Shown one piece after another: positions 4,724 to 53,840 of a DNA stretch of 64,000 bases. Under the pieces are notes generated by a model. It saw nothing but the letters and a program-made list of their open reading frames with translations, ran no database searches and had not been told where the DNA came from. The number at the start of each line of letters is the position of its first letter. The first letter of the stretch is position 1. This DNA is from Thecamonas trahens ATCC 50062 (lineage: Eukaryota; Protista; Apusomonadida). Where the stretch lies: assembly GCF_000142905.1 (NCBI RefSeq), contig NW_013657643.1, positions 13,542-77,541 of the forward strand, read 5' to 3'. Position numbers and translations under genes: made by a program.

Positions 4724-6553
4724 ATGGGCTACTCGGCGAGGTATGCCTCCGGCTCCGAGTCCGCCTCGTCAGCCTCGTCCGACGACTACTATCACCCTGC
4801 TCCCGCTCCTGCCACGTCTCGCCGATCGTCCCGAATGTCTCGCCCGCGCACCCGCTACGACAGCGACGACGATGATGGGGACTACTACGATGTGCTGGCG
4901 GCGTCAGAGCGGGTGTCGAGCGGAAAGACCCGCGTTGAGTTGCGCCTCGACCCTCCGCCGCCTCGCTCCCGCCGCCCGCCGCCCACACGCTCCTCCCCGC
5001 CCACACGCTCCTCGCCCCTTACTGATGAGTACAGTGACTCCAATGAGCAGGACGAGTCAGCTCGCTTCCGAGCCACTCCCCGCGCTGCCCGCTCCTCGCT
5101 GGATGAGGTATATGCTCGTTACGGGAGCCATCGCCAGTTGGCGAGCCCGCCGCGTCAACGGGCTGTCGTCGCGCCACTGGCCGAGCCAGCCCCACATGCG
5201 CTCGAGGCGGCGCGGATCGAGCTGGCGACGCTCTCGTCGGCGCTGCAGAACAAGTCGGAAGTTATTGCAGCCCGCGAGGCTCAGCTTGAGACGCGCGAGG
5301 CCGATGTATCTCGCCGCGAGGCTGACCTCCACCAACGGATCCTTGATCTGCGCCAGGGCGAGGACGAGGTCCTCCGCGGCGCGCGCATGGTCGCCAACGC
5401 GCAAGCTGAGGCCGATGCCCAGGTGGTCGAGGTTGAGGCTGAGTTTAAGATGGTGCTGGGTAGGACCCGCGCCCGTCTCGCGAGTGTGGAGGAGGAGTTG
5501 GTCCGGGTTCGGGCGCTGGCCAGCAAGCTGAAACGGGCCAAGGCCGAGGCCGAGGAAAAGGCCGCCAAGCAGCTGGCCGCCACCTCAGAGTCGGAGGCCA
5601 AGCTCTCAGCCGCTCGCAAGCGTATCGCCAAGCTTGAGCACAAGCTGATGCTGACCAAGACCTCTCCATCGGTGCACTCGCCGCCGTCGGCGTCTCCTGG
5701 CCCGACGCCTCCGTCGCCGACACCCGCTTCGCCGTCCAAGCCATCAAGCGCTACAAAGGCGGCAAGGGCGGCGTACGCGCTGTCGGCGGCGCTGATGACT
5801 GTGGCCACGGCGGCACTGGCCGGCGAGCGTGTTCCGCGCGCCCAGCTGGTCGGCTTGGCTCCACTGCTCGCGCCTGCGGTCCGTCTCACCGCCTCGCGGC
5901 CGGCCGACGACCAAGCTGCGCTGCTCCAAATGGTGCTTGCCGTCGAGCGGGCGGCGCTCTCATCTGATGCCAAGGCGCCGTACTCGGTCCGCAAGCTCGG
6001 CGACGACGTCTTTGCCGCGCCGCGCAACAGCTACCTCGCCGCGCTCGAGCCCGAGGTCCAGGCGCTTGCCGCGCTCGCTGTCATCGGCGCACGCGGCGGC
6101 GTCGACAAGGTCTCGGGCGCACTCAACGTCTTGCGCTCGCTTGTCCAGCGCGACTCTGTCCGTGCGATCCTGCACCAGCACGCTGCGCCGTCGCTGTTCC
6201 TCGCCGCGCTGAGCGGCGCAGCGACCGGCCGTGCCGTCTGCCCTCTCTGGTCGCCACTCGCCGCCGTCCTCCTCTCGCTCGTCTCTGCCGACACCGCCTT
6301 TGCCGCCGCCCTCGCCACCCCCGAGTGGATGGACGCTCTCGCGACCGCTGTCCCCGTCATCGATCCGCAGGATCTCGACTCGCTCTCGGTCGTCATCCAG
6401 AACATCGCTGCCACACCCGCAGGCGCAACCGCCTTTGCCGCCTCCACCCTCAAGCCCGCCCTCCTCGAACTCCGCCGACACGGCACCCTCTCTGACTTTG
6501 CCGGCATGAACATCGACGCCGCTCTTGCTGCATCAACGCCCGCACCCCGCTAA
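4724..6553 (+). CDS. Coiled-coil protein with ARM-like C-terminus, CCDC138-like
   Basis: Low-complexity N-terminus, long coiled coil, then VRKLGDDVF...LDSLSVVIQNI...FAGMNI, resembling the CCDC138 C-terminal domain (LRRLGEDIF, LEKLSIILQKL, FLCINL) from memory. Confidence 0.6.
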   Translation: MGYSARYASGSESASSASSDDYYHPAPAPATSRRSSRMSRPRTRYDSDDDDGDYYDVLAASERVSSGKTRVELRLDPPPPRSRRPPPTRSSPPTRSSPLTDEYSDSNEQDESARFRATPRAARSSLDEVYARYGSHRQLASPPRQRAVVAPLAEPAPHALEAARIELATLSSALQNKSEVIAAREAQLETREADVSRREADLHQRILDLRQGEDEVLRGARMVANAQAEADAQVVEVEAEFKMVLGRTRARLASVEEELVRVRALASKLKRAKAEAEEKAAKQLAATSESEAKLSAARKRIAKLEHKLMLTKTSPSVHSPPSASPGPTPPSPTPASPSKPSSATKAARAAYALSAALMTVATAALAGERVPRAQLVGLAPLLAPAVRLTASRPADDQAALLQMVLAVERAALSSDAKAPYSVRKLGDDVFAAPRNSYLAALEPEVQALAALAVIGARGGVDKVSGALNVLRSLVQRDSVRAILHQHAAPSLFLAALSGAATGRAVCPLWSPLAAVLLSLVSADTAFAAALATPEWMDALATAVPVIDPQDLDSLSVVIQNIAATPAGATAFAASTLKPALLELRRHGTLSDFAGMNIDAALAASTPAPR

Positions 6554-46558: not shown

Positions 46559-47647
46559 ATGTTCCGAGTGAGCGGCAGCGGGCTGCGCATGGCACTTGGA
46601 CTTGGCGGGCGGCGGACTGTTACGACTGTCAGTAAAGGCAGTAGAGGCAGTGGTGGAGGAGGCGGTGCTAGTGCTGGTAGTGGTGCGACTGCCCGTGCTG
46701 GTGGTGGTGGTGGTGGTGGTGGTGGTGGTGGTGGTGGTGGGTCGGCGGCAGGGAGTGGCCGTGCCAGCAAGTGGTTGATGGTCCTGCCGATCACCTTTGC
46801 CGGCCTGGGCACGTGGCAGGTCTATCGCCACCAGTGGAAGCAGGATCTGTTGGATGTACGTGAGAGAGAGGAAGGAAGGAGGGGGGGGGGGGGGAGGGGG
46901 GGAGGGTCGTGTGGGTGGTGGGTGTGACTCATGTGTGTCCTGCTGGAATCGGCCGACTTGCTGCCACCGTCTCGGCTCTATGTGCTGTCTGATACCGGAC
47001 CATGACGGGCGCAACACAATTGATGACTCTCCACTGGCCTCGATCGCACGCGCTCTCGCTCCCAGCGTGTGGCCCAGCGTATTGAGCACGAGCCAATGCC
47101 GCTGGCTACGCCGACGCGCGAAGAGGTCGAGAATGAGCTCGAGTACACCCGCGTGGTCACCCACGGCAGCTTTGACCACTCGGCTGAGATTCTGATGGTG
47201 CCCAAGCTGTGGGATGGTGAGCCTGGGGCACACGTTCTCACCCCGCTAGTTCGCGACGACGGCTCGCGGGTTCTTGTCAATCGTGGCTTTGTCCCGCGCG
47301 AGCTCATGCCGCAGGACTCTCGTCGCGACTCGCTCGTCGATGGCCGCGTTGCGGTCGCCGGCATCCTGCGCGCCACCGAGCGGCCCAACTCGTTTACCCC
47401 CGACAACAAGCCCGAGTCCGGGACTTGGTACTGGCGCGACATCGACGCGCTCGTTGAAACCCTCGACGTTCTCCCGTTTGTTGTCGAGGCCGGCGCGCCT
47501 CTGCCCACCGACGAGCCGGCTGACGATTCGCCCATTCGCCCGGGCGTCACCGTCATCTCGGTGCCTAACAACCACTGGCACTACGCTGCCACCTGGTACG
47601 CCCTCGCGCTCGCCACCTCGGTCATGTACCTCCGCCGCCCGCTGTGA
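46559..47647 (+). CDS. SURF1: SURF1/Shy1 cytochrome c oxidase assembly protein. Exons 46559-46855, 47066-47647
   Basis: FAGLGTWQVYR..WK, VLVNRGFVP, WYWRD, NNHWHYAATWY. Confidence 0.93.
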
Positions 47648-47790
47648 GCGTTGGCTCTTGCTGCGCAGGAGGCCGCGTGTGTGTTACAACTCGCTATCAA
47701 AATCTCCCGTGCTGCCAGTTCCTGCGGTTGCCGGCAAACGAGCGCTTCCGGCGCACCAGAGGCGGGCAGCGCCTGCGAGCGTCCAGCACG

Positions 47791-50700
47791 CTACATCAGG
47801 TAGTTGAGCGGAACAACGCCGGTGAGCCCGCTGCTCACGTTGCGCGCCCTGCACCAACCGTCATCAAACTCTTCAAGCACCTCGACCTGGTCGCCCTCGG
47901 CGCACGCCAGCTCGTCGGTCTCGGTGCCAGCAAACGCGTACCGCATCGCACGCCGAGTCGCCACAATGCCAGGCGCAGGCGGCGGCGGAAGCGTCGGAGC
48001 CTTGGACTCCGGCTCGGGCACCGCGTCGGTCGGCGCGATGCCCCACGCCACGAGCTCGAGAGCAGCCGCGTCCGCGTCGCGCGCCGCGGCTGCCCGCGAC
48101 CGCCGCCGCCGCGACCGCACAAGCACCGCCAGCGCGATGGCGCCCACCGCAATGAGCGCAAAGCCTGAACCGGCGACCGTGGCATACGTCGCAGTCGGCG
48201 ACATGGCCGGCGTCGACTTGGACTGGACCGACGCACCCTGCTGGGCGCCGGCACCGCCAGCCGGGCCGGTCACCGTCAGTGGGTTCGACGTGTCGCAAGC
48301 CCCCTGCGCGTAGTCGACCGCGCCGATGTCGTGCGGCGAGCTCCGGGAGCGCCGGCAGAAGTCGTTAGTGACCTGCGAGAGCGAGACGCCAGCGTTGATA
48401 AAGTTAGACCGCTGCGAGGTGTCGCCCGAGAGGCGGAAGTCGCCGTTGTCCGCATCGACAAAGGCGCTGCGGGCGGCGGCAACGGTGGTGAGCCAGTTGG
48501 AGCCACTGGTGGACGAGCCGCCGTTGCGGTCGGAGATGTCGCCACCGGCGATGATGTTGTTGCGGATGTCGGCGGTCGAGGTGTCGAACCGCACGTCGAT
48601 ACCGTCGGTGTTGAACAAAACATTGTTGTAGATCTTGGTGTCGCGCGCCTCGTTGAGGTAGATGCCGATGGCGGCGCAGTTGATGATCACGTTGTTGCGC
48701 ATGGTGCCGCGGCGGTGCTCCGGGTTGCATGTCCCCTGCCCGCACACCGAGTCTGGCGACGTGCCGCCGCCGCCAAACGAAATACCGATGCGCACGCCGC
48801 CCGAGTGGAGGACCGAACAGGCGATGAGGTTGCCCTCGTAGATGCCGTCGGCGCCGTTGGACTTCATGAACGACTGGTACGAGATAGTGTTGCCGCCGTC
48901 CTTCCACGCGTCGTGGAAGTAGTTGTTGCGGACAATCCACCGCTCGCCACCGTCGATGTTGGCCGGGGTGACCGGCGCCGAGGTCCGGCGCCCGCCGGTG
49001 TTGTAGAACTCGTTGTGCTCGAGGAGGCAGTCGTCGGGGAACTGGCCGCTCCCGATGTTTGACTTGATCTGGGCGTTAAAGTCGCGGATGACGCAACGGC
49101 GCATGACGAAAAAGTCAGCGTCGCCCTGAACGTGGAACGCGTGCTCGCAGTAGTCGTGGTCCGAGCACGTGCCGGTGATGTCGAGGTCCTCAAAGGTCCA
49201 GTACTTGGCGGTGACCACAAAGCCCTCGACGTAGTTGGACGAGTGCGAAAAGTAGAGCTTGTGGCCAGGGAGGCCGCGGACGGTGATCGGGTTCGACGAC
49301 GTGCCCGAGCGCGAGCACGAGATACGGCGTAGCGAGTTGAAGGTAATCGAGCCCGAGATGCCGATGACGTCGCCCGGCGAGGCGTTGGCGATAGCGTTGG
49401 TGAGCGCAGACGCAGAACTCACGGTGACGGTGACCGGGGGCGGGGCGGGGCCAGGACCAGGCGTCGGGGTCGGGCCCGGCGTCGGGGCCGGCGTCCCAGC
49501 GCCGACGGACCAGTTGATGACAAACCCGTTGCCGACCGTGTTCGAGTCGGAGGTGAACCGGATGTTGCCGTTGCCGGGAATCGAGGCGATGGTCGGGATC
49601 GAGGTGCCCGAGTACTGCTGGCCCGTCGAGAGAGTCAGGAAGTCGTAGTTGGCTTCGGTGTTGAACTCGGCCGCTGTCAGCGAGATGGATGACGTCGACG
49701 GGAACTGGAAGTTCCACGTGCAGTCAAGGTCGTTGCCGTAGTAGGTCGAGGTCGAGAACGGCGTCGGAACCGTAATCGTGCCCGAGGTGCCGGACGAGAT
49801 GGTGATCGTGCCGGAGCACTGCGCCGGCGGCGAGGGGGTCGGGGTCGGGGCCGGCGTCGGGGCTGGCGTCCCAGCGCCGACGGACCAGTTGATGACAAAC
49901 CCGTTGTCACGGTCCAGTCGACAACAATCCCCGCTCGGCGGTGTTGCCATCGCTCACAAAGCGGAACGTGCCGTCACCGCCAATCGTCGGCAGTGCGGTC
50001 GGTGAGCCGGTGTACTGCCACGACGACGGCGCCGTGTCGGTGAGATACACCCAGTCGTAGTCGGGCTCAGTGTTGAAGTGAATGACGTTGAACGAGACCT
50101 GGGCCGAGAGCGGGTGGGTCCATGTCCAGCGGCAATCGAGGTTGTGGCCGTAGGTGCCAGCCGGGTCGTAAGGGTCGGGGATCGAGATCCGGCCCGAGGT
50201 GCCCGAGAGGAAGACCGTGCCAGAGCACGGGGTGCCTGGAGCCGGAGTCGGCGACGGAGTCGGTGCCGGAGTCGGCGACGGAGTCGGTGACGGGGTTGGT
50301 GACGGAGTCGGCGACGGGGTTGGTGACGGAGTCGGCGACGGGGTCGCACTGCTCACCGACCAGTTGATGACAAATCCGTTGCCGACCGTGTTCGAGTCGG
50401 AGGTGAACCGGATGTTGCCGTTGCCGGGAATCGATGCCATCGTCGGGATCGACGTGCCTGCGTACTGCTGGCCCGTCGAGAGCGTGACATAGTCGTAGCC
50501 AGCCTCGGTGTTGAACTCGGCCGCCGTCAGCGAGATGGATGACGTCGACGGGAACTGGAAGTCCCACGTGCAGTCAAGGTCGTTGCCGTAGTAGGTCGAG
50601 GTCGAGAACGGCGTCGGGACCGTGATCGTGCCCGAGGTGCCGGACGAGATGGTGATCGTGCCTGAGCACTGCGCCGGCGACGGAGTCGGTGCCGGAGTCG

Positions 50701-51793
50701 GCGACGGAGTCGGCGACGGAGTCGGCGACGGAGTCGGCGACGGAGTCGGCGCCGGCGTGGTACCCGACACGGTCCAGTCGACAACAATCCCCGCCTCGGC
50801 GGTGTTGCCATCGCTCACAAAGCGGAACGTGCCGTCACCGCCAATCGTCGGCAGTGCGGTCGGTGAGCCGGTGTACTGCCACGACGACGGCGCCGTGTCG
50901 GTGAGATACACCCAGTCGTAGTCGGGCTCAGTGTTGAAGTGAATGACGTTGAACGAGACCTGGGCCGAGAGCGGGTGGGTCCATGTCCAGCGGCAATCGA
51001 GGTTGTGGCCGTAGGTGCCAGCCGGGTCGTAAGGGTCGGGGATCGAGATCCGGCCCGAGGTGCCCGAGAGGAAGACCGTGCCAGAGCACGGGGTGCCCGG
51101 CGATGGGGTCGGAGTCGGCGCAGGCGTCGGCGACGGCGTCGGCGGCGGCGTTGGGGTCGGCGCGGGCGTCGGACCCGGGGCGCCGCAAGAGGTCACCATG
51201 GTCGTCGTCGACATGAACTGCTGGTTCTGCTGAATGTTCTCGGCGCCCGACATCGGCTCGGGCACCGTCGACGAGCCCGAGACCATCAGGCCCTGGTAGT
51301 CCTCGGCGTCGGTTGTGGTGGCGATGTGCAGGTGCGGGCCGGTCGAGCAGCCGGTGTTGCCGGCATAGCCGACGACCTGCCCACGGCAGACCGTGTCGCC
51401 GACCTGCAGGTTGGCAAACGAGTCGAGATGCGCGTACAGCGTCCGCACGCCCTGCCCGTGGTCGATGACCACCCGCAGCGCGTGGCAGCACCCGTTGTAC
51501 GTGTTGCGGCAGTCATCGATCTTGAAGATCGTACCGGGCGCCATGGCCAGCACAGGCGTCCCGAGCGTCTGCCCGTTGCCCACATACAGATCCAGTCCAT
51601 AGTACTGATTGGTGTACCCAACCCGATCCACGTAGATGTGGCCCGCCGAGCCGGCGTTCGGCCCGTAGCCTGACGAGACCACTACCTGAGTTCCCGACGG
51701 GAACGGCCAGTCGAACACCATCCCGGATGGAAGGAGCGTGCCACCCGGCTGGGGCGAGGTGATGGCATGAACGTATGCCGTCTGCGACACCAT
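47791..51793 (-). CDS. M23 peptidase + 4 CUB domains (PT linkers) + right-handed beta-helix + TM + SH3 membrane protein; frame break at ~49907-49950; 5' exon unresolved
   Basis: M23: GTPVLAMAPG, TLYAHL, GNTGCSTGPHLH. CUB: YGNDLDCTW, FNTEANYDFL, IRFTSD. Beta-helix with IRNN/IYNN repeats; TM FALIAVGAIALAVLV-RSRRRR; SH3 YAFAGTETDELACAEGD...DGW...GVVPLNY. Branch ACTAAC plus CAG acceptor near 51783-51803. Confidence 0.85.
49505..51095 (-). repeat. Near-identical internal duplications encoding alternating CUB types A and B
   Basis: CUB-A ~50760-51095 vs ~49907-50235 and CUB-B ~50350-50680 vs ~49505-49830 are almost identical in DNA; 12-bp (TPSP)n linkers. Confidence 0.9.
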
Positions 51794-52487
51794 CGCATGT
51801 TAGTGCTCGCCCACACACAAACCCGCCCACACCAGCACCCACCATCGCCATCCCCATGCCCGTCGAGGTCAGCTGCGGAAGGCGAGAATGGGCACATAAT
51901 TAACGTCCCCACACCGGTGCAGGACAATGCCATGCCCGCAACCTCCACCATCACCCATCGCCCATTGGCCATTGGCCACGGCCCATGCAGGAGCGAGCCA
52001 TGGCTCATGGCCCAGTCAGAAGCGAGCCATGGCCAAGAGGACCATGGCCAAGACGGACCGAGCCATTCGCAAAACAGTCCAGAGCCTTCCAAAAAAGCAG
52101 AGCAAGGTAACAGTGGCGCTGCAGGTGGGGAACATGGAGCGCACGCATCTGTCGTGACAAGCTACATATAGCTACGTTGTAATTTGTGGTTTCTAAATGC
52201 TTGGGCGTGTTGGGGGCGCACCCAAGGGTGTAGGGCTGTGGAGTGCGGCTGGTGGAAGTGGCAAAAAGGCCAAAAAAAAATACCAAAAGCAACAATGGCA
52301 TTCGCTGTAGAGGTGCACTCACTGCTGATGCAGGTGCACTCACTGCTGATGGGCAGAGAGGAGGAAGGGTGGGGGGGGGGGGGGGGGGGGGGAACGGTGG
52401 GGACTCATGCTGTGTGGGAGAACATCATCGGCTGCGGGGTCTGATCTGCACGTGGGGCTGGGGCTGGGGCTGGGGCTGGGGCTGCAG

Positions 52488-53840
52488 ATGGTGGTCCTCG
52501 TCCGCGTTGCTATCGTAATGGCTTACGCATGTGGCCTCACGCCGCCAACAACCCCGTCGCCTACACTGGCAGCAGTCTTGATCGCATCGGCAGTCTTTGC
52601 CATTGTCAAGGCTGCCCTGTTCGACTTTCCGATGTCGCCGCACCTGGCTGCGCTCATCGCCACCTTTGTACTGGCCGCGTTTGCGCCTCCGCTCACACTG
52701 GTCGGCCACATTCTCTCGTACACCTCGTACCTCTCGCCGGTGCCTCTTGCGCCGCACCTGCTGGGCGTTGGCGACGACGACCAGCGGGCGCCACTGCTCG
52801 GTAGCAGCACCCGCGGCACCATCAATGGCTACGCCTCGCACCGCTTGTCCTCCTCCTCCGCGTCCTCGTACACCAGCGGGGACGAGGAGGCCTCGGGCTC
52901 GGGATCGTTTGTGTCGGGCACCTCGTTTGCCAGCTGCGACACCGAGTTTGTCTCGGCCGACGGCACTGCAGCCTCGTTTGCCGCATCATCGTTTGCAGGC
53001 GCAGCATCGCCGGCCTCATACTTTGGCACGCCGCGCTCGGACCGGACCTGGGCCGGCGAAGACGGTCTGCTCTACGCCACCCCACCCGAGCACTCGTATG
53101 CCGCCGCCGCCGCCTCCGCACGTCTCGCCTCGCCACCGCTACCGCCGTCGTCGTCGCAAGGAGTTGCAGAAGCAGCAGGCGACGGCGTCACATTTGGCGG
53201 CATTGATGACGCACCCGAGGCCCACCGCGAGCTTCTGCTGCAGACTTGCACCGCGCTGCACGCCTCGCTCTCGGCAGACGCGCCCGGCTGGGAGCCGTTC
53301 TCGCTCGGCAGCTCGGTATCCAACGGCGTCACTCTCGAGGTCAAAGACATGCCGCACGGCGTCCAAGCCGCCCGCGCTCTTTTCTCGCTCTATGCCCCGG
53401 TCGACGCAGTCATCGCCGCGCTGAGCGACTGGACCCGCCGTGCAGAGTGGGACCCCGGGTTCGAATCGGCGACCCGCCTCGCCGAGCTCGGTGGCGGCGC
53501 GGCCGCCTGGCGCCTGGCCTTCCACGGGCGCGAGCTCACCCAGCAGCGCGATGCCTGCGTCCTCTCCGCGCTGTCAGCAGTTGGCCCGCGCGGATCAGCC
53601 ATGCTCGTCGCACTGGTCTCGGTCGAGCGCAGCGACTGTCCGCCGCGCCCTGACTACGCCCGTATGACTGTTTATCCCTCGGGCTTCCTAGTCGAACCGC
53701 TTCCGTCCGGCGCCACACGGGTCGCCGCTCTCTTCGCCTCGGACATCGAGGGCTGGGTTCCGCGCGCCATCAAGCGCCAGCTCACCGCCTCGGTCGCCCT
53801 CGCCGTCGTCGCCGTCTGCAACTCGCTCGCTACAAGCTAG
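52488..53840 (+). CDS. START lipid-transfer domain protein with N-terminal membrane segments
   Basis: Hydrophobic N-terminus, Ser-rich linker, START motifs RRAEWDP, QRDAC, SVERSDCPP..DYARM..YPSGFLVEP, DIEGWVP. An upstream exon is possible. Confidence 0.8.
   Translation: MVVLVRVAIVMAYACGLTPPTTPSPTLAAVLIASAVFAIVKAALFDFPMSPHLAALIATFVLAAFAPPLTLVGHILSYTSYLSPVPLAPHLLGVGDDDQRAPLLGSSTRGTINGYASHRLSSSSASSYTSGDEEASGSGSFVSGTSFASCDTEFVSADGTAASFAASSFAGAASPASYFGTPRSDRTWAGEDGLLYATPPEHSYAAAAASARLASPPLPPSSSQGVAEAAGDGVTFGGIDDAPEAHRELLLQTCTALHASLSADAPGWEPFSLGSSVSNGVTLEVKDMPHGVQAARALFSLYAPVDAVIAALSDWTRRAEWDPGFESATRLAELGGGAAAWRLAFHGRELTQQRDACVLSALSAVGPRGSAMLVALVSVERSDCPPRPDYARMTVYPSGFLVEPLPSGATRVAALFASDIEGWVPRAIKRQLTASVALAVVAVCNSLATS

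Follow-up and report, generated by a model that had tools for sequence, protein, structure and literature searches.

We analysed positions 47791-51793, on the minus strand, of a 64,000-nucleotide stretch of the Thecamonas trahens ATCC 50062 genome (RefSeq assembly GCF_000142905.1, contig NW_013657643.1, positions 13,542 to 77,541 of the forward strand), here called the window, whose own numbering is used throughout. The locus encodes an M23 peptidase domain, CUB modules, a parallel beta-helix, a transmembrane helix (TM) and an SH3 domain. It is a recombinant member of a T. trahens family of predicted single-pass surface proteins, each with a lytic enzyme of bacterial type on the outer side, a stalk rich in Pro and Thr, a single TM and, in the cytosol, one or two SH3 domains; we put the chance that it acts as such a tethered lytic protein at about even.

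As assembled, the locus consists of two long open reading frames (ORFs), ORF1 (49907-51793, 628 aa) and ORF2 (47791-49950, 719 aa), which lie in different frames and overlap by 44 nt at 49907-49950. ORF1, ORF2 and candidate exons were used as separate queries in searches and folding. Every domain listed in the initial annotation was found on the minus strand by Pfam, hydropathy and structural models. That annotation had read M23, CUB, beta-helix, TM and SH3 as a single protein, which did not hold for the assembled sequence, with its two frames and no in-frame signal peptide shown at the 5' end. M23 and the beta-helix on one polypeptide are evident only as collinear DNA, not as protein or transcript. 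One continuous coding region from ectodomain to SH3 was not found at the window locus, and its continuity comes only by homology to the ORF of a paralog, C28.

In blastn, window positions 50757-47980 matched the C28 paralog (L010 5833-8623) in a single alignment at 85.8% identity, straight across the broken junction between the two ORFs. This match lies inside an uninterrupted 1415-aa ORF, and therefore both window ORFs are homologous to one continuous coding region. Positions 51763-50676 matched a second paralog, C3, at 92.8% identity. Together these matches make the locus a mosaic, with a head resembling C3 and a body resembling C28 that meet in the linker behind the first A-type CUB module. 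The C3 match stops at 51763, a short way into the mature N-terminus, which means that the exon for the C3 signal peptide was left out of the copy. According to the reading we favour, the 5' part (M23 and CUB-A) would be a recent copy of the 5' part of the C3 gene, the rest (CUB-B, CUB-A, CUB-B, beta-helix, TM and SH3) would have been copied from the 3' part of C28, and the two would have been joined in the repetitive array of CUB modules and Pro/Thr (PT) linkers.

The C28 paralog (L010:4589-8836; C28:124588-128835, plus strand) is one intact 1415-aa ORF encoding a signal peptide, beta-helix, CUB-B, CUB-A, CUB-B, second beta-helix, TM and SH3; it is the best template for the expected shape of the window gene. 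The C3 gene encodes a signal-peptide exon, M23, CUB-A, a long APTP stalk, a Cys-containing membrane-proximal domain, TM and SH3, with one frame switch, while C8 encodes a signal peptide, beta-helix, Pro-rich stalk, TM and SH3. The M23 domain of C3 is 95% identical to that of the window, and the window beta-helix has paralogs in C28 (97% and 86% identity), C27 (75%, with stops) and C8 (61%). A protein search returned the paralog AMSG_11919 of T. trahens ATCC 50062. The arrangement of a bacterial-type enzyme outside, a TM and an SH3 inside was found at no fewer than five other loci of the genome, and a 120-aa query made from the TM-proximal/SH3 tail matched at least 40 places. C22 (L026:528-5000; G8 and a CEMIP-type beta-helix) and C55 (L024:297-3167; 14 disintegrin repeats) bear other ectodomains on the stalk-TM-SH3 tail, and C15 (L025) was grouped with them. 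C46 (L027:502-3858) has Peptidase_M15_4, two PG_binding_1 and a bacterial SH3_3 outside, a TM, and two SH3 inside; it represents a second kind of peptidoglycan hydrolase tethered likewise. C3 and C22 have in common the Cys-containing membrane-proximal domain, which has no Pfam match. The stalk, TM and SH3 chassis is shared by the window locus and paralogs C28, C3, C8, C46 and C22, but only the window locus has M23 and beta-helix in one array and only it has a chimeric CUB junction. A family of proteins with the enzyme outside and SH3 inside is real and apparently undescribed.

Pfam assigned ORF1 residues 76-161 to Peptidase M23 (PF01551; 71 bits, cut-off 28.7), and sequence matches in the PDB were zoocin A, TagE and lysostaphin (E about 5e-12). 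The AlphaFold2 (AF2) model of the domain had a predicted local distance difference test (pLDDT) score of 90, and its best Foldseek matches were M23 folds of both subfamilies (probability 1.0 against EnpA, ShyA, LytM, lysostaphin and LasA). The predicted zinc ligands H52, D68 (in YYGLD) and H156 are all there and conserved in an alignment of the subfamily, as are the predicted catalytic histidines H154 (first of HxH, in PHLH) and H122 (in the YAHL strand). Six positions (H52, N62, D68, H122, H154 and H156) are invariant or nearly so in that alignment, and the window M23 has every one of them. The His and Asp ligands of the window M23 are 15 residues apart, not 3 as in the usual HxxxD of typical M23 peptidases, a spacing that, going by LasA, is probably more like that of M23A. 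In a subfamily profile alignment, SGYGP..GS.LH aligned with SGYGPRWGRMH-NGID of a solved M23 structure and H52 fell on the canonical His; thus the HxxxD motif is split by an insertion of about 11 residues rather than lost, and the ligand set is complete. The zinc motifs of the initial annotation (H...YGLD, YAHL and GPHLH) are, by alignment, the functional ones. Loss of zinc ligands was not seen, H52, D68 and H156 appearing intact in the sequence. A degenerate, non-catalytic LytM domain, with Tyr at the place expected for the canonical His, was considered and rejected on the subfamily alignment and on the profile alignment to a canonical M23.

A scan of 1.84 billion representatives gave a single close M23 relative, P0121 (52% identical), from Tara Oceans marine metagenome contigs, the longer form of which has a signal peptide, M23, Pro linker, CUB-like module, Cys domain and TM. 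The next matches were bacterial proteins, aligned over the whole 190-residue domain at 33-38% identity. Many bacterial members of the subfamily have a C-terminal tail that is hydrophobic and rich in Cys and Arg; P0145 satisfies the MYXO-CTERM model, and the name attached to P0166 is Polyangiaceae. Marine metagenome contigs L013/L014 encode a 548-558-aa homolog, 52% identical in M23, with signal peptide, CUB-like module and TM, adjoining a Lys/Arg-rich, eukaryote-looking gene of about 60% GC. This context suggests that another marine eukaryote carries the M23-CUB-TM design. A fourth M23 of the T. trahens genome (C18, L028:1662-4469) lies in a 936-aa open frame with a class-III aminotransferase; this fusion is probably intracellular and separate from the surface family. 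Compared with bacterial M23 peptidases (lysostaphin, LytM, zoocin A, ShyA, LasA and beta-lytic protease), the window M23 has in common the fold, the HxH and YAHL histidines, the Asp ligand and SGYGP...H. Its closest bacterial counterparts form an unnamed subfamily with an N-terminal catalytic domain and a MYXO-CTERM anchor, and share with it the 'ALT.P..G' start and the 'VPEP' end. Unlike all of these, it is nucleus-encoded in a eukaryote and joined to CUB modules, a PT stalk, a eukaryotic TM and an SH3 domain.

The second enzyme domain was described initially as a pectin-lyase/chondroitinase-like beta-helix, which stands for the fold but not for the sequence family. Pfam Beta_helix scored 27.3 bits, over its cut-off, while Chondroitinas_B (21.8 bits) stayed under its cut-off of 24. 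The AF2 model (pLDDT 95.6) is a right-handed parallel fold closest to the PL9 (polysaccharide lyase family 9) enzyme Pel9A (1ru4; Z 34.3, root-mean-square deviation 2.8 Å over 328 residues). The next structural neighbours were PL9 rhamnogalacturonan lyases (5olq), alginate epimerases/lyases, the PL31 structure 6kfn, Vibrio RbmB and PL6 enzymes. The PL31 alginate lyase 6kfn (Z 29.0) was also the sole PDB sequence match (E 1.2e-8), over the N-terminal 105 residues only. The Pfam and PDB sequence searches did not place the domain in PL6, PL9 or PL31 at family level. The window beta-helix shares its fold with Pel9A and 5olq (PL9), 6kfn (PL31), and chondroitinase B and alginate lyases (PL6), but is only 14-20% identical to the lyases of these families. 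Its true family is made up of uncharacterised bacterial proteins of about 430 aa, hundreds of which are 45-51% identical to it (typically about 48%; E about 1e-100). They come from Thermoanaerobaculia, Lysobacterales, Holophagales and others, and none is characterised. Asp, Lys, Arg or Asn is invariant in many columns of the family alignment. On the eukaryotic side the family comprises the T. trahens paralogs, a metagenome protein with SH3 (85% identical) and a transcript of Vermistella antarctica. The domain may be called a lyase-type helix at most, not filed under PL6, PL9 or PL31; its fold and neighbours point to depolymerisation of acidic polysaccharides.

Between the two enzymes and around the junction lies an array of CUB modules separated by Pro/Thr-coding linkers. 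At the DNA level the A-type repeats (50790-51089 and 49929-50228) are 99% identical and the B-type repeats (50285-50584 and 49435-49734) 85% identical. Of the four CUB modules claimed initially, the B-type pair passed the Pfam cut-off for CUB (PF00431; 61 and 28.4 bits, cut-off 21.4), whereas the A-type pair fell just below it (19.5 and 19.9 bits) yet aligned from end to end (105 of 110 model positions). The membrane and cytosolic parts were borne out: ORF2 residues 593-611 form a single TM (Kyte-Doolittle 2.35) followed by the basic stop-transfer RSRRRRSR, and the C-terminal SH3 scored 37.8 bits with SH3_1 (PF00018; cut-off 22.9). All features are collected in Table 1.

Table 1. Features of the M23/beta-helix/SH3 locus in window coordinates.
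Feature	Position	Strand	Basis or remark
Candidate exon 1, putative signal peptide, starts MPLLLLVFFFGLFATSTS	52176..52301	-	ATG...GT segments in phase with acceptor; GT donor 52175, phase 0
Candidate intron acceptor AG	51782..51783	-	Exon 2 would begin at 51781 (TAYVHA/ITSPQPGG)
M23 metallopeptidase domain, long-spaced His...Asp subfamily	51209..51763	-	Pfam, PDB matches, subfamily alignment, AF2/Foldseek
M23 key codons	H52 51638-51640; D68 51590-51592; H122 51428-51430; H154 51332-51334; H156 51326-51328	-	
Spacer after M23, ORF1 residues 196-235, second half Pro/Thr-rich	51089..51208	-	Translation
CUB-like module A1	50759..51088	-	Pfam CUB E 1.2e-3, 19.5 bits, model positions 1-105 of 110
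CUB module B1	50354..50668	-	Pfam CUB 61 bits
CUB-like module A2, last strand frame-shifted	49929..50227	-	Repeat analysis, Pfam, junction alignment
Broken junction	49877..49950	-	1 G missing, ORF1 TGA 49907-49909, 29-nt duplicate of B-type CUB tail at 49877-49905
CUB module B2	49501..49818	-	Pfam CUB 28.4 bits
Right-handed parallel beta-helix, polysaccharide-lyase-like, closest to PL9 Pel9A	48271..49443	-	Pfam, PDB, AF2, structure comparison
Transmembrane helix, ORF2 residues 593-611	48118..48174	-	Hydropathy scan
Basic stop-transfer RSRRRRSR	48094..48117	-	Translation
Cytosolic linker with PTLPPPPAP motif	47941..48093	-	Translation
SH3 domain, ORF2 residues 671-718; stop codon 47791-47793	47797..47940	-	Pfam SH3_1 37.8 bits, SH3_9 37.3 bits

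The locus is ordinary nuclear DNA. It is flanked by a SURF1 homolog (47069-47644, plus strand, 133 bits), convergent with the SH3 end, and by a START-domain protein gene (52407-53837, plus strand, 57 bits), divergent from the 5' end, with about 100 nt between the candidate start codons of the M23 and START-domain genes. A long C/G homopolymer (52357-52400) lies between these two genes. Bacterial contamination is excluded by the SURF1 and START-domain neighbours, by paralogs on five other contigs, and by the SH3, CUB and PT linkers.

Both catalytic domains had been described as bacterial-type, and both indeed belong to families that are otherwise bacterial (the M23 subfamily with MYXO-CTERM members; the beta-helix with its hundreds of bacterial relatives). 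In separate phylogenies the eukaryotic sequences grouped together on one side of a branch (SH-aLRT 96 for the beta-helix and 98 for M23, the M23 branch being long), but the trees are unrooted. A bacterial origin of both enzyme domains is suggested by the taxonomic breadth of the sequences, not by nesting. The ratio of nonsynonymous to synonymous substitution rates (dN/dS, Nei-Gojobori) was 0.09 for M23 against C3 (dS 0.13) and 0.116 for the beta-helix-TM-SH3 part against the second beta-helix region of C28 (dS 0.34). Values of about 0.1 indicate that both halves were under purifying selection for most of their separate history. An RNA library (a metatranscriptome) contained contigs with 0-1 differences over 47653-49389; as contigs rather than reads show presence only, the RNA evidence is weak either way.

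Several observations weigh against an intact product. As assembled, two frame breaks occur within 60 nt. Comparison of the junction with the first CUB-A copy and with C28 shows that one G is missing between 49934 and 49933; after GTGAC (49910-49906) come 29 nt (49877-49905) identical to a B-type CUB tail, and then a B-type linker. The net shift is +1, and ORF1 terminates at the TGA at 49907-49909. Judged by its sequence, this 29-nt out-of-frame paste looks more like the product of illegitimate recombination than a base-calling slip. One contig, common to three environmental runs (two of metagenomic DNA and one metatranscriptome), reads as a further B-type CUB joined to a linker of the 49870 type; it has 7 differences from 49550-49663 and continues into the version of the linker that occurs at 49870-49835. 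This extra B-type copy was not found anywhere in the present assembly. Relatives thus carry an extra CUB exactly at the chimeric join, which means that the reference either underwent a true deletion or was mis-assembled there. At the 5' end, ORF1 lacks an in-frame signal peptide, and its ATG is preceded, two codons earlier, by a stop; several in-phase exon 1 candidates exist upstream, and 52301-52176, which encodes a hydrophobic leader, is a candidate only. The RNA library had no contig on the M23 half (51303-51785), a weak point in itself. Prey-wall cutting, binding and actin coupling, as proposed in the initial annotation, are predicted roles.

Much of this suits the main rival account, that of a recently damaged duplicate, which we regard as possible but doubtful. 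Recombination in the CUB array would have deleted one CUB and broken the frame. The product could then be no more than a truncated M23-CUB protein, provided that there is an exon for a signal peptide, and the beta-helix-TM-SH3 part would no longer be translated. The 29-nt pasted tail with its 1-nt gap, the lack of an in-frame signal peptide, the end of C3 similarity at 51763 with C3 exon 1 and intron not copied, the M23 half devoid of RNA contigs and the extra CUB kept there by relatives in three runs all fit this account. Against it, dN/dS is about 0.1 in both halves and no other stop occurs in 628 + 719 codons, the RNA-library contigs match the 3' half almost perfectly, and single-base run-length discrepancies occur elsewhere in the assembly. 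However, a very recent break would leave the dN/dS, RNA and run-length signals unchanged, and the dN/dS values may be compatible with such a break.

The reading of a functional tethered protein takes the frame break to be a probable sequencing or assembly fault. At two G-runs within 4.8 kb, at 52126 and 52211, the window is one G shorter than two independent metagenome contigs. The C3 paralog switches frame at a C/G run (L009 about 5590-5610), where P0121 has its membrane-proximal domain, and one added base would restore its frame. These discrepancies make single-base run-length errors plausible in this assembly; the 29-nt paste, though, is not a run-length type of fault. Public data over 4801 letters comprised short contigs only, none of which demonstrably bridged 49900-49960. 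An intron at the junction was also considered: a 48-nt GT...AG segment (49861-49908) would join the two frames, but the frame-shifted CUB tail would still be retained, and the C3 intron, of about 220 nt, is much longer; we rejected this solution as contrived.

Signal peptides were found in the C28 and C3 paralogs and in the metagenome homolog P0271. Exon 1 of C3 has 16 codons, encodes MFHTHAAVFVVVMLAV and is followed by a GTACGT donor and an intron of about 220 nt; together with the first six codons of exon 2 it makes a signal peptide of 22 residues. The C3 acceptor (cag/AC) lies 18 nt before ATCAC(A/C) (Ile-Thr) codons, with a pyrimidine tract upstream, and the window gene has cag/AC at an equal distance. 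The G added by the metagenome contigs at 52211 falls inside the candidate exon 1 of the window gene, and its frame is therefore uncertain.

T. trahens is a bacterivorous protist, as the initial annotation had supposed; the apusomonads are gliding bacterivores and the sister group of Opisthokonta (bioRxiv 10.1101/2022.11.09.515670). Provided that the living strain has a continuous frame, the product would be a type I membrane protein on the feeding surface, carried into food vacuoles, and both enzymes would act at that surface and later in the food vacuole. The M23 domain would cut the peptide bridges of peptidoglycan, and the PL9-like beta-helix would depolymerise an acidic bacterial polysaccharide, for example capsule or biofilm matrix. 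The CUB modules and the O-glycosylatable PT stalk would provide spacing and perhaps binding. The SH3 tail may dock proline-rich endocytic or actin proteins for sorting, retention and possibly signalling, and the PTLPPPPAP motif that directly precedes the SH3 could loop back onto it. Being tethered, the enzymes, which are costly, would not be lost by diffusion to the surrounding seawater. The topology, substrates, location and SH3-tail role given here for the window protein are all predicted ones.

An intact protein might instead serve outside feeding, in antibacterial surface defence or in clearing biofilm matrix for gliding or attachment, with the SH3 tail used for trafficking only; we think this improbable. 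It would agree with Trichomonas vaginalis, where laterally acquired peptidoglycan hydrolases control bacteria rather than simply digest them (PMC6299479), and with the presence of the Vibrio biofilm-matrix lyase RbmB (Z 27) among the structural neighbours of the beta-helix. Since the organism is an obligate bacterivore, however, prey processing is the simplest reading. If there were two independent genes, one for a secreted M23-CUB protein and the other for a beta-helix-TM-SH3 receptor, the two ORFs in different frames would be accounted for, but this is highly implausible, as ORF2 starts inside a CUB tail, has neither a signal peptide nor room for a promoter (44 nt are common to both ORFs), and the whole stretch is collinear with the inside of one C28 ORF.

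The surface family of tethered lytic proteins may be extended to a bolder proposal, to which we attach little credence for now. Thecamonas, a close unicellular relative of animals and fungi, would possess modular prey sensors with the enzyme outside and SH3 inside; engaging or cleaving a wall or capsule would cluster the SH3 tails and trigger actin-driven engulfment. New specificities would arise as laterally acquired enzyme domains are shuffled by way of the repetitive CUB/PT-linker array, and the window locus would be such shuffling caught in progress.

In the literature outside subscription journals, no paper paired Thecamonas with M23. Searches on M23, lateral transfer and protists and on apusomonads, SH3 and peptidoglycan yielded Trichomonas NlpC/P60 enzymes, chloroplast DipM and archaeal peptidoglycan hydrolases, none of which was reported with an enzyme-TM-SH3 architecture. 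The claim that the architecture is undescribed thus stands within this literature. Single- or multi-pass membrane proteins with a cytosolic SH3 are known from fungi (Fus1 and Sho1), and membrane-tethered CUB proteases from animals (matriptase, enteropeptidase and meprin/tolloid types). They share with the window locus the general layout, either ectodomain-TM-SH3 or protease and CUB on an anchor, and are not known to carry bacterial cell-wall enzymes.

If the proteins are made and active, they would offer a molecular handle on the way in which a bacterivore from the sister group of Opisthokonta retains prey, breaks it open and sorts it, and a clear case of domain shuffling without introns, via repeat-encoded linkers. 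The bacterial beta-helix family concerned, with hundreds of members at about 48% identity, has no characterised representative. Acquisition of bacterial cell-wall hydrolases by protists through lateral transfer is already known. Like T. trahens in our reading, Trichomonas deploys bacterial-derived cell-wall hydrolases, of the NlpC/P60 type, against bacteria (PMC6299479); those enzymes differ in being cysteine peptidases, and the titles and abstracts describe for them neither a TM anchor nor a cytosolic SH3 tail nor a second enzyme domain. What appears new in T. trahens, as far as the literature shows, is the placing of such enzymes on a single-pass anchor with a cytosolic SH3.

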